A stretch of DNA of 64,000 nt from positions 62,001-126,000 of the forward strand of contig NIVC01002205.1 of the NCBI GenBank assembly GCA_002269645.1, in the 5' to 3' direction. The DNA is from Macrostomum lignano (lineage: Eukaryota). Both the position numbers and the translations under genes were made by a program. Below are positions 1-47,763 of the stretch, one piece after another (within the stretch, counting starts at the first letter, position 1; each line of letters starts with the position of its first letter). The notes under the pieces were generated by a model. That model did not search any database and was not told the origin of the DNA. It saw only the letters and a list, made by a program, of their open reading frames with translations.

Positions 1-2069
1 TGAGGAAGCACTTTTTCCCAAATCCCGCGCTAGCACATGGGCTCTAAACTTACTTGCCTACTAACAGTGGGCAATGGGCATTTTTATCTTTTTCTGCAAA
101 TTGTCATAGAATCTATACTAGATATAATGTCTGGCCATACTAGTAGTCATAATAACATAGGCGTAGCTTTTTGGGTCGTAAATCATCGCTTCCGAAGTTG
201 GTCTGACAGCCACCTGCGCCTCACTCAGTGTTGAGACGGGCGCCAGATGGTCTGAGAGGATGCGGGCGGTAGCTTTTTTCTCATCATTTTGACAGGCCAT
301 CAAGAGTTATGAGGTCAGAGCCTATTGTTCGTGTTCACTCAAGCGTGTGACAGCTTTGACAGCTATGCGTTTTACCCCTAAAAGTACTTTGGGATTAGCG
401 ATTAGCGATTTCTCTTCATTATCTTCACTTTCTATTTAATAAGAGCTTTCTAATGTATATTTTTTCATTAATTTCTGTCAATCCTACGCGAAAAGTCATA
501 AATCATTTTGTTGCGATTTTGAGTGATTTATGGCCGCACCTGTCATCTTTTACGACCCTGTGGGAACTGATAGGATCTCTCGGTCACGTGATTCTGGGTA
601 GCAACAAGCTTAGCCAATCAGAAAATTCGGCGCTCATTTTAACAAAACGGCTCAGCCAATCAGAATCGACGTGTTCCGTTATAACAAACTGCGGTCCAGT
701 TGGCGGCTATTTAAACCGGAGTTTTTGGCCCGCTCGGACTAACTCTTGCTCGGGTCCAGCACGCAACTTCTGGTTCCCGGAGCGCGACCGTCGTTTCTTG
801 ATCCCCGGATTGCGACTTCCCCCCATCATCATCAAGGACGAGTCCCCCGGTCGTCAGCAGCGAACATCAAACGAAGATCATCACCTGCTAGCTATCAGCG
901 AAGATTGTGTCAGCATCATCCCGAGTCTACAGCTACAGAGCATCAAGCCGATTCGGTCACTGTGGATTACCTGGTCTCCGGCTGTTGAGTTTCTGATTGG
1001 TTGGGTGAGAGGCTACCTAGACTTGCTTGATTGGGTGATCCCCTATCTGTCCCCTGTTTCAGTAGCTGGATTAGGCGCACACTTTTGCTCATTTTGTTCA
1101 GTAGTGCTGTTACTGAGGCAGAAATCACTTAATAATACTGCTAGTAGTCTGAAACTCCAATTCAATCTGAGGTGTGAAGTGACTTAAGGAGAAGGCTAAA
1201 TCTGACAGTTATTTTTATCGGTTTTAGTTCTTTGTTCGCCGATGGCTCAGATGAGTAGCTAAGCTAGAAGGCGCCGGTCACAGTGGACCAATGGCAAGGC
1301 GGTTCTCAGTCGATCAATCTACCAAATCAGTGAGCAAAACTGCCAGAAGTGCAGAATCGGCGCCAGAGATGTACTTTGTGCACTCTAGGTTAGCCAAGCG
1401 GCTCGGGTAATGAATCATGCGGTCTCTGAAGTTCGAGTTAGTCTATCATCAGCGCTATGAGAGGCTAGTTGGCGCGTTGAAGGCCAAAAGTACATATCTT
1501 CGTATTTAGCAATGTAATAGTACATGTAGCTACCCCATAGACTCGCCACTGCAAGAATCCCCTGCACAAGTCCCCTCTGTACCTGCATGGCCAATGCGAT
1601 CTAGTCCCAGCAGTGTCCCTTATCATCGGCTATGACTTCGAGATTGACAGCAAAAAGACACTAGTTGGCAGGTAAGTGCAAAGCCCCTTCTAGTCGGAAG
1701 CCCGATTTCGAGAGTCCCGGTGTGGTGAGCCAGGACGCACGGGCTGGTGGCAGCGAGTTAGCTTAGTCTGCGGATGAGCTAATTTCTACCTTCAAAATTC
1801 TCCCTGCTTGTCTCTCGCTGTCCCTCTCTTAGCTATAGGACCTAGACTGCTCGCCACACGATCAAGCTACCATGGGGCTGACCATCTGACAGGAGTGGGG
1901 GGCCAGGACTCTAATTGATTTATTTCTGAGGCCTGAGGCCCGAAGGTTCCCTAACAAGGGACCCGAAGGTCGAAACCCATCATAATCAACAAAGAACAAT
2001 AATCTTACAATGAATTCGTCCAAGCAGCCACCGAATTTCACAAACCCGGATACACAGAAGCGGTTAGGT

Positions 2070-2180: not shown

Positions 2181-3374
2181 TTATATTATTTTGGCACCCT
2201 AGCATATAGCTTCTATAAAGCTTCATGAAATTTTTAATCAATCCTCGCCTATATTTCTATATTTTAATTCTTTTCAAATAAATATAGCTCTTTTATTTTT
2301 CCCGCTAATAATTTATAAAGAAAGATTAAAATCCCCTAAAAAATTCTACTTTCATTCCAACTGTCCTTGTCATTCCTTAATCCTTCCGAAAAAAAGGCGG
2401 CGCTTTTTTAATTTCCACGCACACTTTATTCGCTGAAAAAATTGAAAGCTTTTAAGCCGAAAAAATTTTTAATTTCTTTTTTAATTTGCCATTTTTCAGC
2501 TTTAATAATTATTTTACCTGCCACACGCTGTTGCAGCTACTTGTCTACCAAAGCGTTTGGTACGGATTTTACCACACGAATAATCTGTTAGCTTCGAAAA
2601 AAAGCAAAATAAAATTAAAAAATATTTTTTTACTCTCTACTGAAGCATTTCAGAGTCGTTCTCTTTTTTTCTAACCATTACATAAATGCTTCCCTCTTAG
2701 CTTTTCCTATTTTCTCCTCTAGTTTCAGCCTACGTTACAGCGTAGACGATTTTTTTGTCCCAACCAAACCCATCAACTTTTCAAGGCACCAATTTTTACT
2801 ATTTTGCGGCTCCTTCAATTCTCTAATCTACCTAACATCTCTAACAAGTACTGCCCTCTCTACCGAAAAAATATTTATTTTTTTCTCTTTTAAACCCTCA
2901 TTTTTTGCGCACTTACACTTCATTTACTTGCCATGCCTTGATTGCGCTACTTTTTGAAAATATTTCCAAAAATAGTGCAAATGCGTTTTACGCGTAAAAT
3001 CCTGCTTTACGCGTTAAAAATCGACTCTATAAATTCTTTCAAATTTTATAAACCTTCCTTCTTTTATCCGCTATTTCACAGCACCCTTTGCCTTTACTTC
3101 ATTTAACGAATGCGATCAACCAACAAAGCAGAGAGTGTCTGATTCGTCTGATTCCCAATGTGTGTGTGTTCAATTCATTTCGCATCTAAACTCGAAATTA
3201 CTAAATTTTCCTTTCAACTCTCGCTAAACTCTTCGCTAACCCTAACTTGTACCTCAATTCTTCCTTAAAAATTTTACTCTTTCACTTTGCAAAAACTTGT
3301 GCTGCTGCAAATTTAAATACAACCATATCCCCACCAACGATCAGCCAGCTTCCATTTTTTTACACTTTATCAGA

Positions 3375-3476
3375 TAGCCCGAATAGGGCTGCTAAAAATA
3401 CTGATCCACTATTGGATCAACGGTGTCTTACCATGCAATAAATTGAGTCTTCGCAGTAAGAGACCGTCTTTACGGC
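3375..3476 (-). ncRNA. Spliced-leader (SL) RNA gene, flatworm type
   Basis: The minus strand reads GCCGTAAAGACGGTCTCTTACTGCGAAGACTCAATTTATTGCATG|GTAAG. The 45-nt leader (3476-3432) ends in ATG, as flatworm SLs do, and is followed by a GTAAG donor. Other elements: 5' hairpin CCGT-AAAG-ACGG, hairpin TGATCCA-ATAG-TGGATCA, Sm-like site AGTATTTTTAG, terminal hairpin AGCCC-TATTC-GGGCT. From memory the leader matches the published Macrostomum lignano SL; I could not verify this by search. Confidence 0.9.
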
Positions 3477-3874
3477 GAAGAGCTATTCACACCAAAAACC
3501 CCTACAATTCTAATCATACGCCCCTGCCTACGCCCTAACCCCCAACAACACACTTACGCTACTGCTTTGCACTCATTAGCTAGGTTTTTTATGTCATAGG
3601 CATGCCATGACATGTCGAAATTAAAAATGGCTTTTGATGCTGTTATGCCAAAATGACATAAAATTTTTTTGCCATTATGCCATTGCCAAATTGCCAATGC
3701 TGAACCCCTAATTCTAAATTTTAATTTTGCTTTTAAATTTGCCAAACTGACAAGCTATTATCATTCCCATCTGAATCTAAAAGGAAACACTAGTATAGGC
3801 TCACAAAGTGCTATTTCACATTTTATGCCAATGGCATGTCAAAGTTGAAAATGGGATAACAATTTTGACGAAAA

Positions 3875-4445
3875 AACCCAGCTCATTAGCATACAACAGA
3901 AAAAGGGCCAGGAAGCCCACTGCTCCTTGAGGTAGGCCCTCCTGGAACCTTCTCTGTTTACTGCGTCCTCTCCATTTACGAGAGGACGTATTGCATCATC
4001 CTACTCCCACAGTCCCACTCTTGCCTGGCAACCAAAGCTGGTGAACCATTTAACCAGTTGCATTGGGGCTCTCTCCATCATCCTGCTGATCAGTTTTACC
4101 CTCCATACTCTCTCATAAGCCTTAGAGCAGTCGAGCGTTACAGCAATGGTCTTAAGTGTTTTTTCTCGCTTCCCACTCATCCTGAATGGACTGGACATGC
4201 CATATGACCTGCTCTTTGGTGCTGCGGCCTCTGAAAGCCCGCCTGCCAGCTCTTGATGTTTGTTGTTGTTAATGCCAAAGTTTCCTATTCAGAGCCTCTG
4301 AATAGGACTCGCCTTGAACCAGGTCCAGAACGCCAGCGCCCCTCGTTGGTCCAGAGTTCGGATAGATCCATGATAGCGTATCTGTTCCTGGTCCAGAAGG
4401 TGACCGCGCAGCTGCAGATGGCTCGGTAGTTTCTTCGTCTTCCCT
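3875..4445 (-). pseudogene. Degenerate non-LTR (LINE) reverse-transcriptase fragment
   Basis: Recognisable RT motifs occur in order, broken by frameshifts: NYRAIC (NYRPIS-like), RGRSTKEQ, LDCSKAYERVW (DLSKAFDRV-like), GLPQGAVG..LFLLYANEL (GVPQGSVLGP.LF.LY.ND-like). Confidence 0.75.
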
Positions 4446-4750
4446 GCAACATCTGCACCTTCCTGTGTCCTTGTTGATTGTTATGGTGGGGCGCGAGGAC
4501 TTGAGCTCCAGAGAGTGTTATCACCTCTCTTTTCATTTATGTTAGGCCTATCACCTTTGAATTGTCTACTTATTATACTTACTTCTTTTATGAAATAATT
4601 CAAATTCAAGAATGGATAATTTTGGTTGATTCTGCATGCACTCTACTTGCAATTAAAAAGCTCTGACTTGCAATCCATATTTGCAGCTTCTCCATCGCAT
4701 CAAGCCCAGGTTAAGCAATGCAGTGCCAGGGTCTGGACGAAAATGCCACC

Positions 4751-7700
4751 ATGTCAGAGCTACACAATCGTTTACTGAACTATTTGTCTAGTGGCCAGCG
4801 CTCAAAGCAGGAAATTCTTCATGCGGTCCAGCCCTGCACATCATTCAAGCTGACAGTGGCTCTGCAGCAGCCCGCCCAAGCAGATCTTCTTAGCTGCTTG
4901 AATGGAAAGTGTTTTCTGCGCAATTCCACCGATACTGACTTTCCTGCATACTCGAGTACCAATTCATCTGATTTGAAATTTTCATCATCTGAAGTATCGT
5001 CAATAGCTGCATTACCACCAGCAGAGTGTCCGGCCTCGTCAGCTGCATTTCCACCTGCAGATTGTCAGGCCTTATCAGCTGCATTACCACCTGCAGGGTG
5101 TCCGGCCTCATCAGCTGCATTACCACCTGCAGGGTGTCCGGCCTCATCAGCTGCATTACCACCTGCAGGGTGTCCGGCCTCATCAGCTGCATTACCACCT
5201 GCAGGGTGTCCGGCCTCATCAGCTGCATTACCACCGGCAGGGTGCCTGGCCTCATCAGCTGCATTACCACCGGCAGGGTGCCTGGCCTCATCAGTAGCTG
5301 CATCAGCTAACCCAGCCAGCACTGCACAACCCAGTGCTTTCAAGCGGCCATTGCCTCCGCACGAGCTGCTGAAGCTCGGAGGCGCCTGCTCTGACGCCAC
5401 TGCTTCCGTCTCTGCTTTGGGGCCCCCTGTGCCGCCTTCATCCATGGCGGTGCGAGGACGAGGCTGGGGCCGCGGCTTGCAGCGCCAATTCCCGCAGCAG
5501 CCGCAGCAAAGCCAGCAGCCGATGCAGCAAACTCAGCCACAGCCACCTGCTTCGCTGGCTGCACAGAATCTATCAGATGGCGATTCTGACTTGGAGTCAG
5601 ATTCCAATGCGTTATTTGAAGACAGCGATTCCGAACTCTCGGGTATTCATTTCATGCTTGTGTAGTTGTTATTAGCTCCCCTGCTCCGTGTTTATAATCA
5701 GAGCATAGTCTCACCCGCCCCTCCCACAGGCCTGCAGCGCTCCCTGCTCCGCGCCCTTTCGGACAGATGGCCGCAAGCTGTCAGCCGCCTGCAGCTGCAG
5801 AAGCAGGTTGGTGCAGCCAGCAAGTCGGAGGTGAACCGCTCGCTGTACGGTCTGCAGAAGGCGGGGCTGGTTACCAAGGCAACGGACAGCCCACCGCAGT
5901 GGCTGGCTGTCATTGCTATTGGGGACGCCAGCAGTGCATCAGATGCGGGACCGGAAGTTCAGGAAAAGAATGCCGTATCTCGCTTGCAGGTGCGTGACTG
6001 TTAAGCTTTACTGGGTTCTTTTTTATTGATATGAACAGTAGGCACACAAAGCAATTTTCCGCTCGTCAAACTATCTGGGGGGCAACGTTTTTGCTGCGCC
6101 AGAATGGCCCAACGCAGACACACGAAGCTCCAGAACACGGGGTAACTCTTTTTGGGGCACTTTCTCAAACAGGAAGCAAGTCGCCAGTCCTCTAGACCCG
6201 TCGAGATATTCAACGATTCTGCCAGAAATTCAGATTTTTAATGTGCTGATAAAAATTGGAGGCTTGACAAGACTGCACTGAGGGCGGGGCGCAGTGCTGA
6301 TTGGCGCACAGGGGCGTATTAAATATACTGATGCTATGGAAAAATCCGACCTGTTTAATTAGGTGAGGAACAATGTTTGCCCGTGTTCTGGAGTTTCGTG
6401 TGCCTGTGCTGCTCCGTTCCGGCGCTGCGAAAAAATTGTCAGGGGGATCCCCCTGCTGCTAATGCTGAATTTGACTTCTGTTCTGAATCCCTTTGACTTC
6501 AAGCTCACTCTGTGGCTCTCAAAAACTTATCCATCAACTATCGATTCCCCATCTACATGTATAATAACTATATTCGTATTGTTATACTCGTATATACACA
6601 CGAATGCACTGTACTGCTTCTGCAGGAATGGTGTCAGGCCCAGCGGGTGGTGCTGTCCATTGACTGCCTTAGCAGCCGGGGACCTCCTCACCAGCCCACC
6701 TTCAAGTTCGGCGTCAGCCTTGACGGTTCTCCGCTATGCTCAGCCGAGGCAGGCAGCGTCCGCGCTGCTAAACAGCTCGTCTGCGCCACCGCCTTGAAGC
6801 ATCTAGAGATGGAAGGCCGCTTGCAGCCCCCGATGAAGCCGCTGTCGCCTGTCCGGGCTCAGCCCGAGGCTGTCCATGAGCTTGCTGGGCTGGCTGACAA
6901 GCTAGACAGTCAAGGAGATGCTGTGAGTCTGCTTTCTGATGACAATTAATGTTCTCCCAGTCTCTGCATCATATCTGGTCTTCGCAAGCATGCAAAATAA
7001 ACCCTGAATGCTTGACACCTTTGTGCTTATCATACAGGCTTATCATAAGCTGGCTTGGATTGAATTCTTAGTAGAGAAACATTACTGTACTTATATCCAC
7101 AATTACTCCCAATTATAATAATTGTATCATGATTATTATTATGATTACTTTCCCAAAGATTTGCTAATTATTCGACGGTCGTGCATGTGCTGACTCAGCT
7201 GGCACTGAGTGGGCTGTCACGAGTGCCAGATTGCACTTTACTTTTGAGATTTCACCCGGGTTTTGGACCAAGGAGGCCACAGGTACTTTGATTTAGACGA
7301 TACAATCTGTGAACTTGCCGTTCATGATTACTCTATTGTACTTTGTACTTACGAGCCCATAGGCTGCTGAAATTATTACCAATTCTTATTAACACATTTA
7401 CTTCAAAGCCTGGTTTAAAATCTATCAACTGCTCGAATGCCCTACTGCGTAGCCCGCAGCAGCCGTGGACGCCCGCTGGCTGCAAGTTCTGTTGCGGAAC
7501 CCAATCTCAGCCCTGACCGAGTGGTGCCAGTCCCAGGGCCATCGCCTCGACAGTCCCAGCCTGGGCGCCACCGGACCGCCGCACCGGCCCCGCTTTGCCG
7601 CTGCAGTCGACATTGACGGCCGCCGCCTGTGGCAGGCGGAGGCTGCCACAAAGCGCGACGCCCGCCGTGACGCCTGCGACCGGGCGCTTCACCTGCTGGC

Positions 7701-10822: not shown

Positions 10823-12256
10823 CTAAAATTGGAAGCAATGGGCAAGGGCACGTACTGCATTAAACGCAGTGCGTTCTCCGGCGATGAGTTGATTGATGAT
10901 AGTGCTGACGCGGGCATCGTGGAACAGTGTGTTTTGCTTCTTAGGTACAGAGCGCCCTTGTTCAGCATGGGCGATGGCAGTGGCTTGGAGAGCCTCCTCG
11001 CGGTGTAGAGCAGAAATCAGTTTCCAGATGGACGGGTGGGAGCAGTCCAGCTGGGCCTCAAAGCCGCGATGCCAGCCCTCGATGGCATTGTTGGTGCGCC
11101 CGAAGCCGGCTAGGATACGCGTGTGGATATTCCAAAAGCTGCGGGGATAGCGAGCATTCCGTCGCTCACCGCGGGGTCCAATGCGTCCAATGTAGGCGTC
11201 CTCATAGTAGTCGTACAGGCGCTGCAGTCGCTCATCGTAGCCCTGGCGCTGATTGTCGCTGAGTTGCTCGAAGGTCTCTGTAACGTTGGCTGGAGGTATG
11301 AGTGCCAGGACTGGGAGGCAGCGAGCTTCCGTTGCGAGCTCTTCCTCCTCGGCGTATGCGACTGCAAGTCCCTCCTGCTGGATGTGCCGCCAGACGCATT
11401 GGGCGTGGTGGAAAAAGCACCCATCGAGCTCTGCAGCCGGGAACTTATCGCGAAATGCCGAATGGAAAGCAGCTTCATTATTGCACATGATGCGTTCCGG
11501 GTTGAGATTAGGATTTATGTCCTTTAGCGCCTGCAAGAAGCGTTTGTAGGTGTGTGCAGTTTTGTTGTGCAGGAGTCCGTACACTGCAGTAAAAGTTGAG
11601 TTGTAGGCTGCTACATGAAGGGTGTAAATCTGAGCGAATAGTAGAGGAGCTGAATCAAAGGTGCCGTCTCCGTGCCAATTAACATGCTCCTCTAACGAAC
11701 TGAGCCCACGCTGTGTCCCGAGGATTAGAAATCGGTGTGAATCTTGAGCACCGCTGTCGTGGAGGATAAAGTTGGTTCCATCCGTAAGTGAGGCCAGCAG
11801 AGGTGGAACTTGAAGGTCAGCCAGATTGTGCGGCAGAGCAGGTAACCCTGCACCTCTTTTGGCTCTGCGAGCATTGTCCTTCAAGGTGCTTATGTTGGGT
11901 AGTTTCGCCTTAGCACAGTCAGAGAGATTAGCTTGAGCTAGCTCAGCCGAGACAATTCGATGGGGAGCGTCGTTGACGTGGGAGGTTTGCTGCTTTATGC
12001 GTTCTTTAAATTCCAGGATCTTGAGATGCTCTTGACCCTGGCTACGGCAGCATCGGTGCTGGCCAGTCAGTCGCTCCACCGTGTTATGTCTTAGCCACAG
12101 ACGGGCGTGACAGGGTGCGTTGAAACGCTCACAACGAAAGAATAAGCGGGTTGGATCATATTTACTAGTTTTATGATAAACATAGGCAAAGTTTAAATAG
12201 CCTATTTTGCGTCTGCCTCGCTCGCTAATAAGTTCCGTGATAGCTGCCATATGCAA
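10823..12256 (-). CDS. FLYWCH-type + MULE transposase, 477 aa; second catalytic Asp replaced by Asn
   Basis: N-terminal Y...FFRCERF..CHARL...H zinc finger. MULE motifs: WHGDGTF (D1), IMCNNE (normally ..DFE, D2), GCFFHHAQ, RTNNAIEGWH (E). Confidence 0.9.
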   Translation of the reverse strand: MHMAAITELISERGRRKIGYLNFAYVYHKTSKYDPTRLFFRCERFNAPCHARLWLRHNTVERLTGQHRCCRSQGQEHLKILEFKERIKQQTSHVNDAPHRIVSAELAQANLSDCAKAKLPNISTLKDNARRAKRGAGLPALPHNLADLQVPPLLASLTDGTNFILHDSGAQDSHRFLILGTQRGLSSLEEHVNWHGDGTFDSAPLLFAQIYTLHVAAYNSTFTAVYGLLHNKTAHTYKRFLQALKDINPNLNPERIMCNNEAAFHSAFRDKFPAAELDGCFFHHAQCVWRHIQQEGLAVAYAEEEELATEARCLPVLALIPPANVTETFEQLSDNQRQGYDERLQRLYDYYEDAYIGRIGPRGERRNARYPRSFWNIHTRILAGFGRTNNAIEGWHRGFEAQLDCSHPSIWKLISALHREEALQATAIAHAEQGRSVPKKQNTLFHDARVSTIINQLIAGERTAFNAVRALAHCFQF

Positions 12257-13190
12257 TTGTCTCGAGTTGCAGTCTGCTTGTATTACGTATTACAGATCGC
12301 TTTGAATAAAGACTTAAATCAAGACTTAAAAAGAGAATTTCGAGTTGATATTGTTTATGTACATAGTTTTTGGGGTGTGCAGTAGTGGCCGAGTGGCCCT
12401 AGTATGTACAGTCTCAATGTGCAGTCCCTCTTGTCTTTCCTCGCTTCCAAAGAATTCTATTGGTTCGTTGGGCTCTAGAGAACGAAAACAAATGGGGTGG
12501 GTATAGGCTAACTAAAGGGTTGGTGTGGGGAATCGGCCAACAAAACACGAAGCTGGGGTCTAAAGTATATTGTAGCCTTTATTTATTACTATAATTAATT
12601 ATATTGTGATTAGTATTTTATAAAGTACAGTATAATACTTTACTAATCCTTTCTATTACTACACATAGTAAGTTTATCAAATTTTTAAACTGCCCAGTTA
12701 TTCTTAACGAAATACGAAAACCAACTTGATACGAGTACATAGTCATGATGAAATAAGATAAAGTTTTCCTTAATAAGATCTATTTTCGTCCTAACTTGAA
12801 CATCTACTAACTCTAACAAACTTACAAACAGGTTTTCATAGTTTCCCACAGAATAAAAAGCAATGGAGAAATCAGGATGTCAAAAGCAACATTTAACATG
12901 GGCTCAACGTTGTTGCTATATAGAGTTTTATGTTTTATATTTAGGCACATTATATGTAGGCACAAAATATATTATGTATAAAACTAATGTATAATATATA
13001 GTGAAGTTGCAGAACAATAGAACTTTCCTTCACTTCATATTCACTTCCTTTCCTTCAGGAAGTACTATACTAATGTATTATACTATGTATTATACTATGT
13101 ATGTATACTATGTATAATACACTAGTATAGTACTAATGTATTAGTATTATACTAATACATAAGGAATATCTCCCAGCTGCACCATTTGTT

Positions 13191-13506
13191 GCGTTACTGA
13201 ATTCAAGCGTTACTAAATTCAGGCAGTACTAAATTCAAGCAGTACTAAATTCAGGCGGTACTAAATTCAGGCAGTACTAAATTCAAGCAGTACTAAATTC
13301 AGGCAGTACTAAATTCAGGCAGTACTAAATTCAGGCGGTACTAAATTCAGGCAGTACTAAATTCAGGCAGTACTAAATTCAGGCAGTACTAAATTCAGGC
13401 GGTACTAAATTCAGGCGGTACTAAATTCAGGCGGTACTAAATTCAGGCGGTACTAAATTCAGGCGGTACTAAATTCACGGTTACTAAATTTCGGTTACTA
13501 AATTCA
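13191..13506. repeat. Subterminal 16-bp array (AGGCRGTACTAAATTC), about 20 copies, in the right TIR of the MULE
   Basis: Read directly; the reverse complement occurs in only about 4 copies at 9731-9790. Confidence 0.95.
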
Positions 13507-14327
13507 AGGGCACCCGTACGTGTCCTCTATAATCGGCTGTCAATCACAGATTGTTTATCGCTTTGTTTGGTAACTTTGCCTATTTAGTAAATTCGCCACA
13601 TCCTGTTGCCAAAATTCTTCGAGTTGCATTTAATTTTTTGCTGCAGGCTGCCTGCCATCATGGGGAGGGCACAGTCTGGTTTATGCGCCTGCATGTCTCA
13701 TTTAACTGTAAAATCAAGAGTTCATATTTAGTCGGCATTCTTCATTTTGATTACTTAAAATTCCATAATAAACTACTTTAACACAATCGCTGCATTTGTC
13801 CTTTTAATATAGCGGTATCATTGTCATTATGTGCAGATTGCGTCACTTCCACAGGGAATATGGCTCTGGCAGCTGCTGAGACCTGTAATATTAGTATTAG
13901 TACTGATATTAGTTAATATAGTTAATATAGTTAATATTAATATTAATGTTTAGTGTTGTAGCACTGCGTGTTATTAGTGAGCTGCAGCACCTGCTGTTTT
14001 CTGTTCAATAAGAATTTAAGAATATGCTCATCCAAAATTAATTATAAAGGCCTGTATATTTGAGATTTGTGACAATCAGTAAACTACTTTAAGTAGAATC
14101 AAATTTTATAAAGAATTTAAGGCTCTGAGCTTTATTGTTTTAATTTTATTTTCAAAAGCATTGTGGATTATTCTTCAGTGCGCAAGTTCACAGGCAAATA
14201 TTCTTTACTGTTAGTAGCCGCGCAGTAGACTGGCAATAAAATTCGCTCGTAGAAACTGACGAGAATTGATTCGAAATCGCATGGAAAATATAGAAATATA
14301 AATGGGGCTTTGTGGCTGGCTGGCTGA

Positions 14328-20400: not shown

Positions 20401-21885
20401 CGGTGGGGCCTTGACGCGTGCAGCAGCGAGCGGGCGGTGAGGCCTCAGCTGTGTACACGTGAAGCGCCCTCATCGAGCTGCACAGATCATCTGCAGTTTT
20501 ACAGGCATATTTCCCTGGTTAAGAGTTTTTAGCTAGCTGGATACAGATTAAGTTCAGTAACTCTTAAGCTTCTGGTGCTCGATAAACTGACGCATGCTCT
20601 ACTTAGCTCCAAAAATGCATTTAGTTTGTAACTGGATAAATAGAATAGTTCCAATAAAAACATTTGCATTTGCAGCATGATAGCTTCTGAATTAGATTCA
20701 ATTAGACAACTCTCTTCATTCAGCAAGTTGCCCAATCAACAGCGGTACGTTTTTGCTCTCATTTTTGGTCATGAACCATCGGTATCATCAATATACGCAC
20801 ATACCTAAGGTAGTTAAACCTCCTGGCTTTGTACCAATCCTACATGTACATGTGACATACAAAAAATACCTGGCACGCAGATCAAATGCACAACCTTTAT
20901 CCATGTAAACAGCCTAAAAGTGAGATGCATTTAAATTCTGACGCAACCAAAATGTACTTGAAAATCTGCGTTACCGCTGCGATTGAGGAATGATATTTAC
21001 TTGATCTAGGCTCAAGTCGCATACCAAGTCAGTAATAATTACATCCCCTATCGAAAAATGAATTTAATCAAAAGTTTGTTTTCGAAAAACTGCTTATATT
21101 CACGCTTTAAGAGAATATGTCAGTGTATAATGCAGAAGGGTAAATAATAGATGTTCAGCAACAAATTCCGCCACTACACACAAGAATACGAGCGTACAGG
21201 GAAGTGAACTCCAGAGTTCTCATATATTTTTTGCTTGCAGACATAAATACGCATTTAAGCAAAATTAGGACAGAAGATTGAGACGTGGAGAAGCAAAAGA
21301 ATTTTTTCAAAATGATAACATCGATAAATAGGAGCAGCTTAAATATATACGTGTGTGGCGGAGTACTTGTATTTGTGATTAGTGTTAATATTAAATAAAT
21401 ACTGTTGTACTAATAATTAATGAACTCGTGTATTATTTTAAACAAAACGAACTAATTTGAAATTTTCTTGTAGTTTGAACTCGAAAAACGAATTTTTAGA
21501 AATAAAAATAATTTACGGATAGTTAAAAAGTGTTATCAAATTAACAAAACATGATAATCAGTACTAGCGAACGTTATAATTTCACGGCTAGAATATTGCG
21601 CTATAGCAACGCCAACGGTAGTAAATTCGGCATTAGAAACCCACAGCCCAATTAGTCAGTTCTTTCTACTGGGATCTCTCTACTGAGCAAGTCATCGAGA
21701 TAAGTTCAGGTGCAGCGCCATTGGATGGTGTAGAAGAAGAAGGCCTCCAGAGCAAACACCGTGCCGGCCGTAAGCAGCCACACGCTGTAGCCGCCATAGC
21801 TGTAGTGCCGTGAGTAAAGCCCCAGCGATATCAGCAGCGAAGCGGCTGCGGGTGGGTGGGGGATGAAGCGATTGCTTAACTGCGT

Positions 21886-22161
21886 AGGCTGAGTGATGGA
21901 TAGAGGGCAGGCTGAGTGACGGATAGAGGGCAGGCTGACTGATGGGTAGAGGGCAGGCTGACTGATGGGTAGAGGGCAGGCTGACTGATGGGTAGAGGGC
22001 AGGCTGACTGATGGGTAGAGGGCAGGCTGACTGATGGGTAGAGGGCAGGCTGATTGATGGGTAGAGGGCAGGCTGACTGATGGGTAGAGGGCAGGCTGAC
22101 TGATGGGTAGAGGGCAGGCTGACTGATGGGTAGAGGGCAGGCTGACTGATGGGTAGAGGGC
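21886..22161. repeat. 23-bp G-rich minisatellite (TGACTGATGGGTAGAGGGCAGGC), left block
   Basis: Read directly; lies in intron 2 of the claudin-like gene. Confidence 0.95.
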
Positions 22162-22863
22162 GCTTGCACGGGCGTATTCAGCATGCCAGTGAAGTATGAG
22201 ACAGACCAGGCCTATGGGCTAAGGTCTGCGATGCTCCACGCCTGTCCCTATCTTCAGCAGGTAAAGGCTGGAGGGAGGTCTGCACCCTCTATTTGCCGCT
22301 GGCAGCCGCAGACCCCCCCTACGCTGTTTCGCAAGCCGACCCAGGGGTACCCGTCCCCGCGAGTGTTCAAGGCAGACCCTAGGGCTGCCGGACAGACTGG
22401 GTTCCGGCGCTGGGGACCCATCCAGTGGCTTTTGCCGAACTTGGGTATGCGGGTCTGGCTTGCCAGTCCGCAGGCCGTGGTACTGCTCAACGTACCCTCT
22501 AATGCCTAAGGTGTTTGACCGTGCCGATCGGCTGGAAGGCCGGGGAGTAGTCCGGTCGCAAGCGGTCCCCCTCCTGGTGTCGGGCCAGCTTTGAGGGTTC
22601 TTTTGGCCTACTGCCCGGTCAGGTGGAGCGGCCGGGTGGGTACCGCGCCCCTTCGAGGGTAGCCCACCAACCTTTATCATGGCCTTCGAGCCGACTATGG
22701 GTAAAAACCCTAGCTGGCAACACTGGGGGACCTCCCTGGGCGGCGCTAACCATTCGTCCATAGCGACGCGTCGGCCGTTCAGGGATTAGCGGAATGGGCG
22801 CTCGCGCCTTCCCGCTGTGTCCCCCGGGACAGCCCTGCAGCTAAGCAAGCGGCAAGTAAGCAA
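22162..22863 (+). mobile_element. About 700-bp GC-rich insertion splitting the minisatellite; possible non-autonomous non-LTR (RTE-like/SINE) element
   Basis: Unique sequence flanked on both sides by GATGGGTAGAGGGC. Its 3' end is a short AAGC/TAAG repeat tail. No convincing ORF. Confidence 0.45.
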
Positions 22864-24110
22864 GATGGGTAGAGGGCAGGCTGAGTGATGGATAGAGGAC
22901 AGGCTGAGTGATGGGTAGAGGGCAGGCTGAGTGATGGGTAGAGGGCATGCTGAGTGATGGGTAGAGGGTAGGCTGAGTGATGGGTAGAAGTCAGGCTGAC
23001 TGATGGATAGAGGGCAGGCTGAGTGATGGATAGAGGGCAGGCTGACTGATGGATAGAGGGCAGGCTGAGTGATGGATAGAGGGCAGGCTGAGTGATGGAT
23101 AGAGGGCAGGCTGAGTGATGGGTAGAGGGCAGGCTGAGTGATGGATAGAGGGCAGGCTGAGTGATGGATAGAGGGCAGGCTGAGTGATGGGTAGAGGGCA
23201 GGCTGAGTGATGGGTAGAGGGCAGGCTGAGTGATGGGTAGAGGGCAGGCTGACTGATGGGTAGAGGGCAGGCTGACTGATGGGTAGAGGGCAGGCTGACT
23301 GATGGGTAGAGGGCAGGCTGAGTGATGGATAGAGGGCAGGCTGAGTGATGGGTAGAGGGCAGGCTGAGTGATGGGTAGAGGGCAGGCTGAGTGATGGGTA
23401 GAGGGCAGGCTGACTGATTGTAGAGGGCAGGCTGACTGATGGGTAGAGGTCAGGCTGACTGATGGGTAGAGGTCAGGCAGACTGATGGGTAGAGGGCAGG
23501 CTGAGGAGGGCAGGCTGACTGATGGGTAGAGGGCAGGCTGAGGAGGGCAGGCTGACTGATGGGTAGAGGGCAGGCTGACTGATGGGTAGAGGGCAGGCTG
23601 AGGAGGGCAGGCTGACTGATGGGTAGAGGGCAGGCTGACTGATGGGTAGAGGGCAGGCTGAGGAGGGCAGGCTGACTGATGGGTAGAGGGCAGGCTGAGT
23701 GATGGGTAGAGGGCAGGCTGACTGATTGTAGAGGGCAGGCTGACTGATGGGTAGAGGTCAGGCTGACTGATGGGTAGAGGTCAGGCAGACTGATGGGTAG
23801 AGGGCAGGCTGAGGAGGGCAGGCTGACTGATGGGTAGAGGGCAGGCTGAGGAGGGCAGGCTGACTGATGGGTAGAGGGCAGGCTGACTGATGGGTAGAGG
23901 GCAGGCTGAGGAGGGCAGGCTGACTGATGGGTAGAGGGCAGGCTGAGGAGGGCAGGCTGACTGATGGGTAGAGGGCAGGCTGACTGATGGGTAGAGGGCA
24001 GGCTGAGGAGGGCAGGCTGACTGATGGGTAGAGGGCAGGCTGACTGATGGGTAGAGGGCAGGCTGAGGAGGGCAGGCTGACTGATGGGTAGAGGGCAGGC
24101 TGAGTGATGG
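22864..24110. repeat. 23-bp G-rich minisatellite, right block, with 14-bp truncated variant units distally
   Basis: Read directly; GAGGAGGGCAGGCT variants appear from about 23500. Confidence 0.95.
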
Positions 24111-24803
24111 AATGATTGACCGAGAGCAGTATGATATTGGCTAGAGGCCTAAATAGTTGGTTACTAGAGAATGAAAATGCATGAGGCACATGTTTTTGCA
24201 GGCTACTAACGAGAAAAGTGAGCAGTGACTAGAACAAATTTTGCAGGTCGGCCTCCAGCAAATTGCTCTCACCTGACAGCAGGCAGCAGATGAAGCACAG
24301 AAGGTGCATGGCCCGGCTCAACTTAAAGGTGTTGGACGCCACCATGAGGATCTCCATGAACAGGCTGAAGCCAAGCATGGCTACCCCAATTATAGCGAAG
24401 GCCTTGATTGTGTTGGCCCATGCTGAAATTGAGCATACACAGGCTATGGAGAATTTGTCTCTCATAACTACGATACGAGTATCACAAACACCTAAGCAAA
24501 CTACTATTTACTATTCGTTTTCAAGACCCTCCTCCATTCTTAAAAACAAGAAATACATGGCATAGTCCTGTCAAATCCAATACTCCTAATGAGTACTCCT
24601 GATGACTCCTAATGACAGTATAGGAGTGACATGTGGCAGTCACTCTGTGCCTAAGATGACAGTGACAGTGGCAGTGCCCTAAGACAGTTTTTTAAACATA
24701 AATTTTCTATTCAATCAGCTGCTAGGCTAGCAAAGGGCCGAGAAACTGTATAAATTGTGTCAGGGCCTCCTAAGAGCCCAAACTCACCCTCATTGGGGGG
24801 GCA

Positions 24804-35311: not shown

Positions 35312-38300
35312 ATGCCCGACTATCTGTCCTGCGGGGCCTGCCACACCGAATTCGAAGTGATGGACTTCCACCGCTTCCTGGACCATAAGATCTCTAGCTG
35401 CCACATTCGGTACGATGGCTCGGGCCCATCAGAGTCGATGCTCGAATGCTCCAAATGCAACAGGCGCTGCCGCACACCCTGGTCTCTGCTGCAGCACCTG
35501 CAGTTTGATCATTGCATGTCGCTGGTGCGCACTTTGATGCTTCCAGCATCTCAGGCCGGCGTCTCCAGCGGTCATTCAGAGGCCAGCACGCAGACTAGCG
35601 GCTCCAGTTTGAAGCGACAGGTCTGCCCGTGCGATGACATTGATGAGCGGCTGACAGTTGACTGCTGCCTGGTTGACACAGGCGGTGGTTGTTGCCCAGT
35701 CGAAGGCTGCCCAGCTGGCAAGCCTCTCCAAACACCGCAGTGCTGTCTGGCAGTCCCGAAAAAGCGCCGCCTGTTGGCGCTTCGTCCGTGCGACAACGGT
35801 GATACAAGTGCCGGCTCTAGCACTGGTGTCGGCGACGGAGACGCCAGCCCGGAAACCGCCAGCGCCAGCGCACCTGCCTCGTCTACCAGAGATTCGCCAT
35901 CAGGGCAACCGCAGACGCCACAGACGCCGCAGCAGACACAGGTTGCCACGTCCTCTGCTCAAACGCCGCTGCCTCCTCCGCCGCTTTTGTGCTGCTCGGC
36001 AGTGAAGATTGAGTGCTGCCAGAAAGCAGCAACACCCGGCCCTCCTAGGTGAGTGGGTGAGAATAGGCATTGTTTTATGGGTCTGCACTCTTGCTGTACA
36101 AAATTATTTTTACGATACTTGCAACTTGCAAATTTTAGATGCAGTTGTTGAAATTCATAAGGTTTATCGACAACTTTCTATGAAATCAAATTTTGTATTG
36201 ATTGAAATGCACTTCACGTTAATGACCTCTGCTTAATGGCTGGTCATTAACTGAAAGTCCTGTTTTGACCATAGACAATTCAATCAATGCAGCTAATATG
36301 AAGCGGTAATTTAAGTTAATGGCCAAATTTCAATTGCCCACGCCATTGGCCATTGGCCATTGACCTTGGCCATTGCCTAGAAAACTCGCATGGTTTTCTT
36401 TCAGTAAAAGCACATCAAGAAAGTTCCAAGGAAACAGTATTTGCTGATGCTACGGTTTGCTTCAAAGTCAATTATTTTTCTGTGATCGTAGAACTTGTCT
36501 ATTGCTTGTCTAAAAATAGAACAATAATTAGGCAGCCAATACTAGGATTTGTACTTTTAGCAACGCGTTCCTGTAAACAGTTTGCCCAGTCTAGTCATTT
36601 CTTCGTTCATGGTCGCTGCCTCGCAGCCTCTTTTTTTACGCGTCCTGGCCTACATTTCTAGGCGCTCTGATTGACTGACTATCTATGCTTGACTTAAAAA
36701 AATGTTTTTGGATTTCTCCAATCCGTTTAAGTACAAGCCACTGGTTAAATCTACATGTAAAGTACCCCTTTCTGAATTAGCATAAGCGAAACCTATTAAG
36801 GGGCGAGGCTTTTAGGCAGTGGGAATTTTTCGTCTATTAGCTATCACCTGCTTATCCTTTTATGGGACGCCTTTTGAAGAGCGCACTATCATATGGGCAA
36901 GCCGGCAGGGTCGCAATGGATTTTAGGGTGGGGGGACAAAGCAAAGAATTCTACATGTACATGTAAATTATTTTCAGAACGGGTGTTATCAGCGCTCATT
37001 TAGCGCCGCAGGCACTCATTTTGGCGCCCCAGAGACTCATTTTGGCTCCACAGGCACTCATTTTAGCGCCGTAGGCACTCATTTTGGCGCCGTAGGCGCT
37101 ATATATTTGTCGCCCTGAAGCAAAATTATTGATATCCATAACGGGTCACAAGGTTCGGGGGGGGGGGGCGGAAGCATTGGCATGTCCCCCCCCCACAGCT
37201 TTTACTGGGGGGACATGCCCCCCCCCCCGGTGGCGACGCCCCTGGGTAAGCGGTTGGACAACTTGTATTGGAGCACACTCATTGGACATGTCACATGAGT
37301 GCACTGCCACGAGTGCACTGCCATGAGTGCAATGATATACATGTAAGCGCACTGCCATGAGCGCACTGCCATGAGCGCACTGACATGAGCGCACTGACAT
37401 GAGCGCACTGACATGAGTGCACTGACATGAGCGCACTGACATGAGTGCACTGCCACGAGTGCAGTGCCATGAGTGCAATGATATACATGTAAGCGCACTG
37501 CCATGAGCGCACTGCCATGAGCGCACTGCCATGAGCGCACTGCCATGAGCGCACTGACATGAGCGCACTGACATGAGTGCACTGACATGAGCGCACTGAC
37601 ATGAGTGCACTGCCACGAGTGCACTGCCATGAGTGCAATGATATACATGTAAGCGCACTGCCATGAGCGCACTGCCATGAGCGCACTGCCATGAGCGCAC
37701 TGCCATGAGCGCACTGCCATGAGCGCACTGACATGAGCGCACTGACATGAGCGCACTGACATGAGCGCACTGACATGAGCGCACTGACATGAACGCACTT
37801 TTACTACGAAGTGGCACAAAGAGACTTGGGGGTCGTACTAGCTCGTATAAAGCTGTCGTAGCGTAAGTTCGATCGTACGTCGGAACTTTTACACTGCGGA
37901 GATGGGAGCTAAGAACGATCTTATCTTACGATGGCTTTATAGAACGGGCCCAATCACTTCTAGCTACTGCTAGGCAACCCAGTAATCAAACGAATGTATT
38001 TATTACCTTGAGTCCTGTTTTGGAGAGCTCTTCCTTGCGTAGATCTCGGTTTCAATCAGTCTAGACGTCTAGATTTAGTTGTCCTGGTCCAGGTTCCTCT
38101 TTACTTCCAACGAAGTCGTTTCCGGCCGGTATCTGTCGTTCGGACCAATCAGAAGCTTCGAATTAACAATGGGATCCCTGCGCCGTACTGCGGTTTCAAT
38201 TAAGCCTTCTCCTTCTAGCAGTGCCTTAATGCACTCTAGGTATAGCTCCGGTAATCACTGATAGTCCTCTAAGATCTATCAGGGTTAGTCCTTTTGGAGA

Positions 38301-41300
38301 CTACAACCAATGGAGTCTCAATAGACTCAAGAGTCTCAATAGACTCAAGAGTCTCAATAGACTCAACTACAACAACAACAATGAGTCGACTCAAACACCA
38401 GGGCGCAAATGAGTAAGGCTTACTTACCGCAAGAACTCGACCGAGTCTCGATTGACTTAGTCTTCAGGAATTCCTCCTAAGGCTTCCTCTTCTCTTCGGA
38501 GCGTCTCCTTCTGTAGGTTCGGTTGTTGGCTCCGGGTCCGCTTCGGACCACTTGTATTTATAGGCAAACGGACCCCTCGCGAGGTCGTCCATCACCTTTT
38601 TTCGTAAATGTCAAAAGGTCACGCATTGGTGGCTGTCAAGCATGACAGGGTAGAAAGTTAAGCCACTAGTCTAGTGTAAGCGCGCATGATTGGTTACCGT
38701 AGCTGGGTTATTTTGGGCTCTCTTTGATTGGTTCATCCTGTGCAGGCCGAATGATGAATCGCAGATGGGGTTTAAACTGACAATTGTAGGTTAGGTCACG
38801 CATGACTGGTTGGTTGCAAAAAATAACATGTTTGACTTACTCTCTTGTGGTTCGTTGACTAAAATTACGCATGTGATTCAGTACTTATTTTTATACATGC
38901 TACTTACTATAGCACTAAATAAAGATTTATAAGTAGTATGTTAACAATTTGTATGACTTTTCTTGGGAGGTATAACACTATACACTACTTTCAGTTCATT
39001 AGTAAGTTAAACAGAAGCATTTTAATGTATCTTACAAAGACACGGCTCATTTATTGGATCTTACCCCCCCCCAGCTTAACCCTCCAACAGCGCCTTTCCA
39101 CACTACCCCCTCGCCCCATCCCAATTTTTATTGCCTTTCTCGGAAATCCAGCCTAAGCTGCCATGTACATTTCAGTGGACTGGCTAATGTACATTTTTGC
39201 TGAACCAAATAGCAAGCTGTTTACGCCTGCAAACTTGGGCTTCTAAACTTATAAAAGTCGTTTCAGCTGCCTTATTTTTATAAAATAGCTTATGTATTCT
39301 TCTTTGCTACTGAACTGAAAGTAGAAAGCTGTTTTACTAAGTATCTTTGCCTGAGTGGCCCATCTAGTTATTTTAGTATTTGTGAGGGAGGGACGGAGAG
39401 ACAGTGAAACAACTTAAAAACCAATGTTCAACCCCAACAACGTGTTTGAAGGGTGCACTGCAAAGCGCGGTGTCATAGCGCGCCTTTTATTTTGTGACAA
39501 GCTTGGCTTAAGAGCGCAGGCACAAACCTGTATGAGCGCGCAGAGGCCAGACACGAAATTTTACGAGCGTGCAATGATGAAGGCGCGAGTCGATTATATA
39601 TTTGTAGTAGCGCAGAAAATAAATTAGGATCGTACCGCCGTCTTCATAAAAGTCTCTACCCAATTAGCGATTGGGGACACGTCAGGGTAAAAAAATCTAG
39701 TACTTGAATGAATCTGCTTTGCACATGTATCTTTACACATGTATCTTTACACATGTATCTTTACACATCTATCTTTACACATAATTATCTTTACACATGT
39801 ATCCTTACACGTATCTTTACACATAAGTTTCTTTACACATGTATCCTTACACGTATCTTTACACATAAGTATCTTTACACATGTATCCTTACACGTATCT
39901 TTACACATAAGTATCTTTACACATGTATCCTTACACGTATCTTTACACATAAGTTTCTTTACACATGTATCCTTACACGTATCTTTACACATAAGTATCT
40001 TTACACATGTATCCTTACACGTATCTTTACACATAAGTATCTTTACACATGTATCCTTACACGTATCTTTACACATAAGTATCTTTACACATGTATCCTT
40101 ACACGTATCTTTACACATAAGTTTCTTTACACATGTATCCTTACACGTATCTTTACACATAAGTATCTTTACACATGTATCCTTACACATAAGTATCTTT
40201 ACACATGTATCCTTACACATAAGTATCTTTACACATGTATCCTTACACGTATCTTTACACATAAGTTTCTTTACACATGTATCCTTACACGTATCTTTAC
40301 ACATAAGTATCTTTACACATGTATCCTTACACGTATCTTTACACATAAGTATCTTTACACATGTATCCTTACACGTATCTTTACACATGTATCTTACATG
40401 TAGCGAGAATTCGCTTACTAATCCAATCATACAGAACGGTGCGAATTTCCTTTCATTGCACGAATAGTTCCATACGTTTATGCTTAAAGGCTAGTCTGTT
40501 TCAGAGGAGTTGCAAGAGTAATGGAGCCAATGGAGCCACAAATCTTAGAGGAAAATCTGATGGATACAGCAAGAGCTAAATTTGCCACTACGTAAGATTG
40601 CCTACATCTGACTTCTTCATCCCACAGGTCGGTGCAAAGCACGAGCAGCCAGACGGACTTCGTGGTCACATTGGACATCGACATGGATATGCTGCTGGGT
40701 GGCGGCGAGGGGCCCTCCCTGCTCAACGAGTCCAGTGAGGAAGCGCCACAGACACGAGCTGTAGCGACTGCGCCCTGCAAGGCCATCCAGACCCTCAGCC
40801 GAGTGGCCTATCCAGCGGGCGAGCCCGACCCGGCAGCTGCTGTCCACGCCGTCCCCGTACCGCCGCCGCCTCCGCCACCGACCAGCGACTCGGGTATCTA
40901 CTTTGCGTCGGACCCTTGTGTACAGTTTGGTGGTGGTGGCGATGGCAGCTTTTCTGCTGCCCTGGCCGATGGAATGGAGACAAGCGCCACTCACTTGGCG
41001 CCTCTGGATACCTCCTATTCCATGTTCTCCAAGTCACAGGTAAGCTTGCGTGGCTTCTTCTTGTTGTCGATTTCACCTTTTTTTCTTCTAATTGCCATTT
41101 TTGACGATACATGTGGAGTCCAACCTGGGCACGGGCAGACAGAGTCATATAAAACCTTCTAAAAACCATTCGTGACTCCTACCAGCCATGTCAGAAATTT
41201 ATAGCTTTGTTTTCTTTGACGCTCTGATTTAATGTAAATTAAAAATGTCTTCTTGTCTGCTTTCTTCCTAGAATTCATAACGGATTGCCTCAATAATTCT

Positions 41301-42995: not shown

Positions 42996-43425
42996 CAGTG
43001 GCGTAGCCGGGGGCGGGGCGGGGGGGGGCCGCGGCCCCAAATCGCCTGGGGGGTGGGGTTGAGCGCGGCGGGTACCAAAAACCATGAAGCAATTTAGTGC
43101 CTGCGGCGCTAAAATAAGTGCCTGCGGCGCCAAAATGAGTGCCTGCGGCGCCAAGATGAGTGCCTGCGGCGCCAAAATGAGTGCCTGCGGCGCTAAAATA
43201 AGTGCCTGCGGCGCCAAAATGAGTGCCTGCGGCCCCAAAATAAGTGCCTGCGGCCCCAAAATAAGTGCCTGCGGCGCCAAGATGAGTGCCTGCGGCGCCA
43301 AAATGAGTGCCTGCGGCGCCAAAATGAGTGCCTGCGGCGCCAAAAGTGGCAATGGCATAAGGCATGCTATTGGCCAGCCAAGCCAACCCGGCCCCCCTCA
43401 ATTGAATTTCCTGGCTACGCCACTG
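42996..43425. mobile_element. hAT-type MITE carrying a 21-bp x about 12 internal array
   Basis: Perfect 13-bp TIRs CAGTGGCGTAGCC / GGCTACGCCACTG, 8-bp TSD ATGTGCAG (42988-42995 and 43426-43433), internal unit GTGCCTGCGGCGCCAAAATGA. Confidence 0.9.
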
Positions 43426-44291
43426 ATGTGCAGTTGCTAGGAAACAGTAGCATACAGTTTTGCACAGTATTGAATTAAAATTCATTTTTTGGGACACCCG
43501 GTATAGTCACTGATGCATAAATAGACACTTGGAAGCATTCAATTCAAATGACAATCTATGTTAACCTGTTGATGCAAGTTAATATATTGGCGCGCAAAAG
43601 TTTATTTTTTTGCTGCAGATTTTTCATATGCGTACAGTAAGTGCTATTCATGTAAATCCTCTCTAGCTAAAGAGTCCAGTATTTATTGATGGGGTGCATG
43701 CGCAATGTAGAACAGGGTCACATGGGAAAGATAGCTAGTAATTTGGCACCCAACTGTGTTCAAGGCTTTTTTGTTCAATCGACGCGTTCATTTTTTTTCT
43801 TCAAATTGTGAAATTCTCATCTTGCACTGCTTAATTTTTGTCTAATGTGGCTAAGTGTTGAGATGCCTTATGACCCCAGTGTTACAATACGATTGAATAC
43901 CATATAGTAGGTTTATTCTGTACGCATACGCTGTTGCTTGCCTAAAGATAAAGATACTACTATAATTGTGCTCCAGAATAGGTATCCACAGTTTTGCTAA
44001 TAAATAAATACTGTATTGGCATGCTACGCAGTACCTGAAAATTTCAAAGGCGTTGCGTTGCTTGCACGCTTAGCGCATGTAAATGTGATTCAAAACCATC
44101 TCGATTGATGACTGTGGTGGTTTGCAGCCTACATGTAAGCTTTGTCCAGTGAGAATTGCATGTACATATTATAATGGGCTGGCTATATAGGAACAAAAAG
44201 TTGGATTTTAAAAGATTCGAGCTATGCATAGATACATCTAGCAACAGAAAATTATCCACACCTGCGCTACAAGCTAACAAAGCAACAAGGT

Positions 44292-44996
44292 CACAAAGCT
44301 AAGAATGAGAGCTTACTCTCGTCGCTGAGCTAGCCACCCTCCAAAGGCCACAAAGCTAAGAGTGAGAGCTTAATCTTGTCGCTGAGCTAGCCACCCACCA
44401 AAGGCCACAAAGCTAAGAATGAGAGCTTACTCTCGTCGCTGAGCTAGCCACCCTCCAAAGGCCACAAAGCTAAGAGTGAGAGCTTAATCTTGTCGCTGAG
44501 CTAGCCACCCACCAAAGGCCACAAAGCTAAGAATGAGAGCTTACTCTCGTCGCTGAGCTAGCCACCCTCCAAAGGCCACAAAGCTAAGAGTGAGAGCTTA
44601 ATCTTGTCGCTGAGCTAGCCACCCACCAAAGGCCACAAAGCTAAGAATGAGAGCTTACTCTCGTCGCTGAGCTAGCCACCCTCCAAAGGCCACAAAGCTA
44701 AGAGTGAGAGCTTAATCTTGTCGCTGAGCTAGCCACCCACCAAAGGCCACAAAGCTAAGAGTGAGAGCTTAATCTTGTCGCTGAGCTAGCCACCCACCAA
44801 AGGCCACAAAGCTACGAGTAAGAGCTTAATCTTGTCGCTGAGCTAGCCACCCACCAAAGGCCACAAAGCTAAGAGTGAGAGCTTAATCTTGTCGCTGAGC
44901 TAGCCACCCACCAAAGGCCACAAAGCTACGAGTAAGAGCTTAATCTTGTCGCTGAGCTAGCCACCCACCAAAGGCCACAAAGCTAAGAGTGAGAGC
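44292..44996. repeat. 57-bp minisatellite, about 12 copies, with alternating A/B variants
   Basis: Variant A has AATGAGAGCTTACTCTC...CCCTCC and variant B has AGTGAGAGCTTAATCTT...CCCACC. They alternate for the first 8 units. Confidence 0.95.
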
Positions 44997-45336
44997 TGTC
45001 TGTTAGTGATATGGATGTTATCGATGATATGGATGAACGTACTCTCAAACGAGAGCCCTGACGAATTGACGGTTCAACGGAGCTCTGGCTAAGTTCTACC
45101 AGCGCTGCCCTTCAGTGAGACACTGAGGCCCTCGGGTCGAGGCCACGTTGTCAAATCCGCCAGTTTCTATCTAAACCGCGCTTGATAACGACGCCCTCAG
45201 ACAAGGTTATCGCGGACGTTACGTCACAAGACTGGTGCGGTTGGGCGAGGGAATAAAACACGGACCGGGGGAGACGATGCAGATCAAGCGCCTCAAAGCG
45301 CGAGTAGAGAGCAAAACGGCCGGGAGATTGGACAAG

Positions 45337-47318: not shown

Positions 47319-47763
47319 CAGCCTGAATCTGTCACTCTCCCAACCCAGCCTGAATCTGTCACTCCCCCAACCCAGCCTGAATCTGTCACTCCCCCAACCC
47401 AGCCTGAATCTGTCACTCCCCCAACCCAGCCTGAATTTGTCACTCCCCTAACCCAGCCTGAATCTGTCACTCCCCTAACACAGCCTGAATCTGTCACTCC
47501 CCTAACACAGCCTCTCCCCTAACACAGCCTAAATATGTCACTCCCCTAACACAGCCTGAATCTGTCACTCCCCTAACACAGCCTGAATCTGTCACTCCCC
47601 TAACACAGCCTGAATCTGTCACTCCCCTAACACAGCCTGAATTTGTCACTCCCCTAACCCAGCCTGAATCTGTCACTCCCCTAACACAGCCTGAATCTGT
47701 CACTCCCCTAACACAGCCTGAATCTGTCACTCCCCTAACACAGCCTGAATCTGTCACACAGCC
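47319..47763. repeat. 27-bp minisatellite (CAGCCTGAATCTGTCACTCCCCTAACA) abutting the stop codon of the 47764-48732 gene
   Basis: Read directly; about 16 units. Confidence 0.95.

Follow-up and report, generated by a model that had tools for sequence, protein, structure and literature searches.

A probable dispersed copy of the known Macrostomum spliced-leader RNA gene upstream of an ADAR locus in Macrostomum lignano

A short segment of the minus strand, at positions 3368-3476 of the 64,000-nucleotide stretch of Macrostomum lignano DNA that was analysed (the window), is in all likelihood a copy of the Macrostomum spliced-leader (SL) RNA gene, one of the few that lie dispersed in the genome. Both the gene and its leader have already been published, and the locus is this known gene and no new kind. 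It should be annotated as an SL RNA gene, having been missed by ORF-based tracks and by Rfam, and it matters little beyond annotation.

The elements of the gene are collected in Table 1. Its 3' end is approximate, lying within 3365-3375, and the length of 109 nt adopted here is that of the published M. lignano gene. Read along the minus strand, positions 3476-3432 spell GCCGTAAAGACGGTCTCTTACTGCGAAGACTCAATTTATTGCATG, after which come GTAAGACACCG and two hairpins, GATCCA/TGGATC and AGCCC/GGGCT, with the tract ATTTTTAG between them. The junction between exon and donor, ...UUGCAUG-GUAAGA at 3434-3426, is enclosed by the first stem-loop, in which the leader's 3' part is paired to the donor and the opening bases of the intron (GACGGU.../...ACCGUU). 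The Sm-like site is U-rich and aligns to the flatworm UUUGG motif, matching neither RAU(n)GR nor UVUUUGG exactly, while the AUAAA that follows the last hairpin may, judging from its sequence and position, be a signal for 3'-end formation or belong to the tail of the RNA. The original prediction had read from the letters a 45-nt leader ending in AUG, a GU donor, three hairpins and an Sm-like U tract on this strand, and sequence and fold place each of these elements at the coordinates of Table 1. Its description of the gene as apparently intact also stands, exon, donor, conserved stems and Sm-like site all being without defect.

Table 1. Elements of the Macrostomum SL RNA gene, in coordinates of the window
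Feature	Position	RNA positions	Strand	Basis or remark
Whole SL RNA gene	3368..3476		-	5' end from the onset of conservation and the 45-nt M. cliftonense leader
Leader exon, 45 nt, AUG-terminated	3432..3476		-	Exact match to published Macrostomum SL; 100% identical in L001 and L002
5' splice donor GUAAG	3427..3431		-	Base-paired within stem-loop 1; published M. lignano gene also GTAAG
Stem-loop 1	3419..3468	9-58	-	Encloses AUG-GUAAG; matched to helix 1 in the alignment with the cestode/trematode model
Stem-loop 2, GAUCCA-AUAG-UGGAUC	3403..3418	59-74	-	Fold; stem invariant in three homologues
Sm-like site AUUUUUAG	3392..3399	78-85	-	Single-stranded between stem-loops 2 and 3; invariant in three homologues
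Stem-loop 3, AGCCC-UAUUC-GGGCU	3376..3390	87-101	-	Fold; stem invariant in three homologues
AUAAA, 5-6 nt past stem-loop 3	3366..3370		-	Kept in all three loci; candidate 3'-end signal or RNA tail

The predicted fold is considerably more stable than expected from composition, with a minimum free energy of -34.5 kcal/mol for the RNA of 109-112 nt, compared to -22.3 +/- 3.4 kcal/mol in dinucleotide shuffles (z = -3.5 to -3.7). In the minimum free energy and centroid folds of this RNA and of the two homologous RNAs described below (L001 and L002), the donor lies inside the first hairpin and the Sm-like site is single-stranded between the other hairpins; the same three hairpins are present in all three RNAs, with z-scores from -3.4 to -4.6.

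The leader itself links the locus to published work. It matches the M. lignano leader at 44 of 44 nucleotides and that of M. cliftonense at 45 of 45, and the 35- and 44-nt versions published for M. lignano are both contained in 3432-3475. The sequence appears in Grudniewska et al. 2016 as the M. lignano trans-spliced leader (PMC5173321), and the same leader has been assembled from M. cliftonense, where it is 45 nt long and carries the leading G seen at window position 3476, and from M. hystrix, in a 43-nt version (Wiberg et al. 2023, PMC10468722, Table S3). The presence of the leader on mRNA 5' ends is here taken from the Macrostomum transcriptome literature, in which 21,754 of 71,499 M. lignano genes (~30%) carry it (Ustyantsev & Berezikov 2021, PMC8629364). 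The same work describes the M. lignano SL RNA gene as a 109-bp unit of which the deduplicated Mlig_3_7 assembly contains eight; the RNA folds into three hairpins, has a GTAAG donor and bears an Sm-like motif between the second hairpin and the third. The present locus and that gene are alike in leader, GTAAG donor, three-hairpin fold, position of the Sm-like motif and length, and no difference between them is demonstrable in a comparison made by described features and not base by base. An assignment of the leader to Schmidtea was considered and rejected, the full-text sequence search having given the Macrostomum leader.

Two independent homologous loci were found in public sequence collections through exact matches to a 23-mer that covers the junction of leader and donor; this 23-mer had no match (0) in viral contigs. 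The first, L001, is the JGI metagenome contig Ga0302322_100095745 (3,076 bp), and carries a neighbouring gene for a Na/K-ATPase beta subunit (PF00287); the leader was absent from Logan transcripts homologous to this neighbour. The second, L002, is JAGQZA010000190.1, a contig of 3,752 bp filed in a ‘Flavobacteriaceae bacterium’ metagenome-assembled genome (MAG), on which a U1 snRNA gene (1121-1283; Rfam U1, 151.7 bits) lies 306 bp upstream of a Macrostomum-type SL RNA gene (1589-1697) and on the same strand, a linkage between snRNA and SL genes that has no counterpart in the window. The ATPase subunit and the U1 gene indicate that both contigs are eukaryotic. L002 is a flatworm contaminant within a bacterial bin and exposes such contamination in a published bacterial MAG. 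On L001, directly upstream of the intact SL gene, positions 601-628 hold a 14-nt tandem duplication that takes in the transcription-start region together with the leader's first 8 nt (CGCCGTAAACTCTTT followed by GCCGTAAAG).

Comparison with these two loci delimits the transcribed unit and reveals which of its positions can change freely. In both, the exon is 100% identical, and RNA positions 1-105 are identical to the window at 92.5% in L001 and 95.2% in L002. The 200 nt on either side of the gene show only 48-54% identity, where random 200-mers of the window give 49.4 +/- 3.4%, and the flanks are thus at the random level. Conservation is confined to the RNA: it begins at a pyrimidine run just ahead of the G at 3476 and ends after AUAAA at 3370-3366, and identity falls to the random level past about +125. 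Within these limits the differences lie at RNA position 57 (window 3420), which belongs to the outermost, dispensable pair of stem 1; at positions 67-68 (3410-3409) in loop 2, which reads AUAG, AUUC and AUAA among the three homologues; at positions 75-76 (3402-3401) in a linker; and at positions 93-96 (3384-3381) in loop 3, where the length changes by 1 nt. Further differences are found past position 102. Variation placed in loops and linkers, together with identical folds, is what purifying selection on a functional structured RNA would be expected to produce. Compensatory changes were found in no stem among the three copies, and since the stems never vary, the structure rests on the restriction of variation to loops and on the cross-class model described below, and not on covariation within Macrostomum.

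This model, R1, is a covariance model trained on 30 of 75 unique cestode and trematode SL RNAs (PMC12582326, File S1); the window was no part of the training set. Its structure is a hand-drawn arrangement of three helices, which replaced the RNAalifold structure of a MAFFT alignment that had given only 4 pairs. On the training sequences, 84% of the positions pair in the drawn structure, compared to 31-47% after sliding one of the strands, and every one of the five pairs of helix 2 shows both-side changes. The original prediction had proposed a covariance model as a check, and once R1 was built and run over the window with filters off (both strands of 64 kb, 128 kb in all), the SL locus ranked first, with a full-length match at 3378-3475(-) that scored 26.5 bits, for an E-value of about 6e-5 on a rough calibration. 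The homologous genes of L001 and L002 scored 27.3 and 27.8 bits. The next match in the window, at 46735-46818(-) with 12.8 bits (E = 0.15), was attributed to chance, as it has neither leader nor donor nor BLAST similarity to the gene. In the alignment of the SL locus to the three helices of the model, CCGU..ACGGU is placed against CCGUAAAGACGGU, UUGUAUG-GUGAGU against UUGCAUG-GUAAGA, and UUUGGCUGGCC against UUUAGCAGCCC. This element-by-element correspondence and the match itself indicate that the Macrostomum gene is a recognisable homologue of SL RNAs found in parasitic flatworms. A model derived from parasitic species that finds the gene of a free-living Macrostomum supports a single origin of flatworm SL RNA, and it offers a way to annotate such RNAs. 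Rfam, in turn, gave 0 matches at gathering score in the whole window and no SL family in 3100-3800 even at E <= 10; the gene was missed there because Rfam has no flatworm SL family.

The claim that the window holds a single copy was borne out by three routes. The 44-mer leader occurs once at up to 3 mismatches (0 occurrences are expected by chance, 0 of 100 shuffles having any match), blastn-short with the whole gene detected no degenerate copy in the window, and the covariance model gave no second credible match. The space surveyed is uneven, with 60.5 kb free on one side of the gene and only 3.4 kb on its left, so that a loose cluster or neighbouring copies are possible on that side. L001 and L002 also carry one SL copy each, and tandem organisation, taken as same-strand copies less than 5 kb apart, is seen neither there nor at the window locus. 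The accompanying statement that SL genes usually sit in tandem arrays proved correct as to their being common in flatworms, but the arrangement is not universal: Hymenolepis microstoma has five non-clustered SL RNA genes, and M. lignano has its eight copies. Tandem arrays, as found in Schistosoma, Fasciola, Echinococcus and many non-flatworms, are an organisational trait and no requirement of the RNA family. The eight copies of M. lignano, the single copies of L001 and L002 and the example of H. microstoma indicate that a solitary gene is normal here, and no mark of an orphon.

The immediate surroundings of the gene include features that may point to past rearrangement. Between the SL gene and ADAR, at ~3880-4250 (-) and thus 400-770 bp upstream of the former, lies a frameshifted reverse-transcriptase fragment that scores 27.3 bits against RVT_1, below the Pfam cut-off of 29.6, and ends before the catalytic YxDD region. 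On the other side, 1.2 kb downstream, positions 2062-2185 hold an interstitial telomere array in which (TTAGGG)15 stands head to head with three inverted units, (CCCTAA)3, and a degenerate telomere-like dimer is found at 3234-3245, ~120 nt downstream; no other telomere-like repeats occur in the 64 kb.

Such a setting could suit a silent orphon or pseudogene, that is, a dispersed copy whose sequence was kept by recent duplication or gene conversion, untranscribed and without a working promoter. The copy is single and its flanks are unrelated to those of the homologues, the decayed reverse-transcriptase fragment lies upstream, the interstitial telomere repeats downstream suggest a rearranged neighbourhood, and no upstream motif is common to the window and either L001 or L002. 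This explanation is nevertheless judged distinctly unlikely. No damage is seen in the exon, the donor, the Sm-like site or either of the conserved stems, whereas the pseudogenes known from parasitic flatworms have lost the AUG or the GU (PMC12582326), both of which are kept in the window copy. Dispersed single copies are, moreover, normal in the genus, with eight in M. lignano and one per contig in L001 and L002. Finally, the stretch after the gene is A-rich, but it is so at all three loci, and therefore does not represent the poly(A) tail of a retroposition event.

The possibility that the locus instead represents a trans-spliced mRNA whose 5' end was captured, be it as a processed pseudogene or through cDNA contamination of the assembly, deserves mention in that the leader alone would be present in such a copy too, and that the same mis-assignment befell the first published ‘M. 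lignano SL RNA’ (PMC8629364). It is, however, extremely improbable, as what follows the leader is not coding sequence but GUAAG and then a conserved intron part that has Sm-like site and hairpins, aligns to the introns of cestode and trematode SL RNAs and is conserved at two other genomic loci. Chance resemblance can be given next to no weight in view of the exact 44/45-nt match, the covariance-model match and a conservation limited to an island of ~110 nt.

If the locus is an SL RNA gene of the known Macrostomum kind, as favoured here, its role would follow, by analogy to SL RNAs generally, from its transcription into a small snRNA-type RNA of ~105-110 nt, to whose AUUUUUAG site Sm proteins would bind and which would gain a trimethylguanosine cap. 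The resulting SL snRNP would enter the spliceosome and supply the 5' exon in trans: the branch point of an outron, or of an operon's intercistronic region, would attack the donor held in stem-loop 1, and the leader, with its terminal AUG, would be joined to pre-mRNAs with an outron and to downstream operon genes at their 3' splice sites, thus becoming the 5' end of the mRNA.

The manner in which such genes might be transcribed was approached through their upstream regions. K-mers and gapped 10-16-mers revealed no motif common to the three SL loci beyond what shuffles give (p > 0.5), and the same held, against shuffled controls, for motifs common to the SL upstream regions and that of the U1 gene of L002. 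A scan for sigma-70 promoters was discounted, the host being eukaryotic. An element inside the gene, of the kind described for Ascaris, is one candidate for the promoter. One could propose on this basis that Macrostomum SL genes are dispersed single-copy loci without a shared upstream promoter element, their dispersal being perhaps tied to snRNA genes and telomere-like repeats, a proposal that is considered unlikely. Its contextual side lies in the presence of a TTAGGG array at most 1.3 kb from the SL gene both in the window and in L002, where degenerate repeats at 270-340 lie 1.3 kb upstream, and of the U1 gene 306 bp upstream in the latter; the association between telomere repeats and SL genes comes from a very small sample. 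Transcription of the SL gene of Ascaris is reported to depend on intragenic sequence, and were the proposal true, the same would apply in Macrostomum; an intragenic promoter could then help explain the invariance across species of the 45-nt leader and of the first 11 bases of the intron.

The neighbour from which the SL gene diverges is an ADAR gene on the plus strand, and its predicted distance of about 1.3 kb agrees with the 1,242 bp measured from the first SL nucleotide (3476) to the ADAR ATG. This ATG, at 4718, opens an in-frame first exon followed by a GT..AG intron of ~60 nt, and the gene then encodes a z-alpha domain (5666-6004), two dsRNA-binding domains (dsrm) and an A_deamin domain that extends to 9325. 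Homology searches returned ADAR1-type proteins, none above 42% identity, and exact look-ups of the first-exon ORF, as well as of the transposase ORF mentioned below, found no record. The linkage to ADAR is incidental, because L001 and L002 have other neighbours, namely the ATPase subunit and U1. Within the first exon, positions 5005-5294 (+) consist of eight tandem units of 36 nt, 94% matching, which encode a 12-residue repeat (ALPPAGCPASSA) upstream of z-alpha. A pyrimidine-rich TTTGCAG is located at 4677-4686 (+), 31 nt upstream of the ATG, and could, by its sequence, be a trans-splice acceptor; were it used as such, the leader's AUG and the ADAR ORF would be in different frames.

Other features were observed elsewhere in the window. 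An uninterrupted ORF of 477 aa at 10823-12256 (-) combines a FLYWCH zinc finger with a MULE transposase domain (PF10551, 1.1e-10) and may represent an intact Mutator-like transposase. A near-perfect inverted repeat, with ~4.7 kb per arm and its centre at ~56538-56585, spans 51803-61282; its segments match with 100% complementarity, displaced by indels of only 1-2 nt, and it resembles the ‘missed adapter’ artefact of long-read assembly more than a palindrome of biological origin. The intergenic space is filled with many minisatellite arrays (periods of 14-57 nt), located at 13127-13541, 21748-24163, 37251-37832, 39665-40388, 43049-43384, 44173-45099, 47235-47854 and 49342-49810.

Among known systems, the SL RNAs of cestodes and non-schistosome trematodes (Echinococcus, Fasciola, Opisthorchis; PMC12582326) resemble the Macrostomum gene in the 5' CCGU...ACGGU, in AUG-GU, and in a donor that lies in hairpin 1, with two hairpins ahead of the Sm-like site and one behind it. 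The criteria by which flatworm SL RNAs are recognised in that work are a leader that ends in AUG and is followed by GU, in agreement with the prediction that flatworm SL exons end in AUG, and an Sm-like variant, UVUUUGG, described in parasitic flatworms. The two groups differ in the leader, of 45 nt in Macrostomum but 31-36 nt in these cestodes and trematodes, in the Sm-like tract, AUUUUUAGC in the former and UVUUUGGC in the latter, and in organisation, as the genes of these cestodes and trematodes are often in tandem, with up to >100 copies, whereas the Macrostomum gene is present here as a single copy. The nematode SL1 and SL2 families (RF00198, RF00199) have no detectable similarity to the locus. 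The nematode RNAs nonetheless share its function and its general plan, in which the leader is short, the donor lies in stem 1 and hairpins flank the Sm site; the SL1 gene of C. elegans sits in the tandem repeat of the 5S rDNA, and the Macrostomum gene is, by contrast, solitary.
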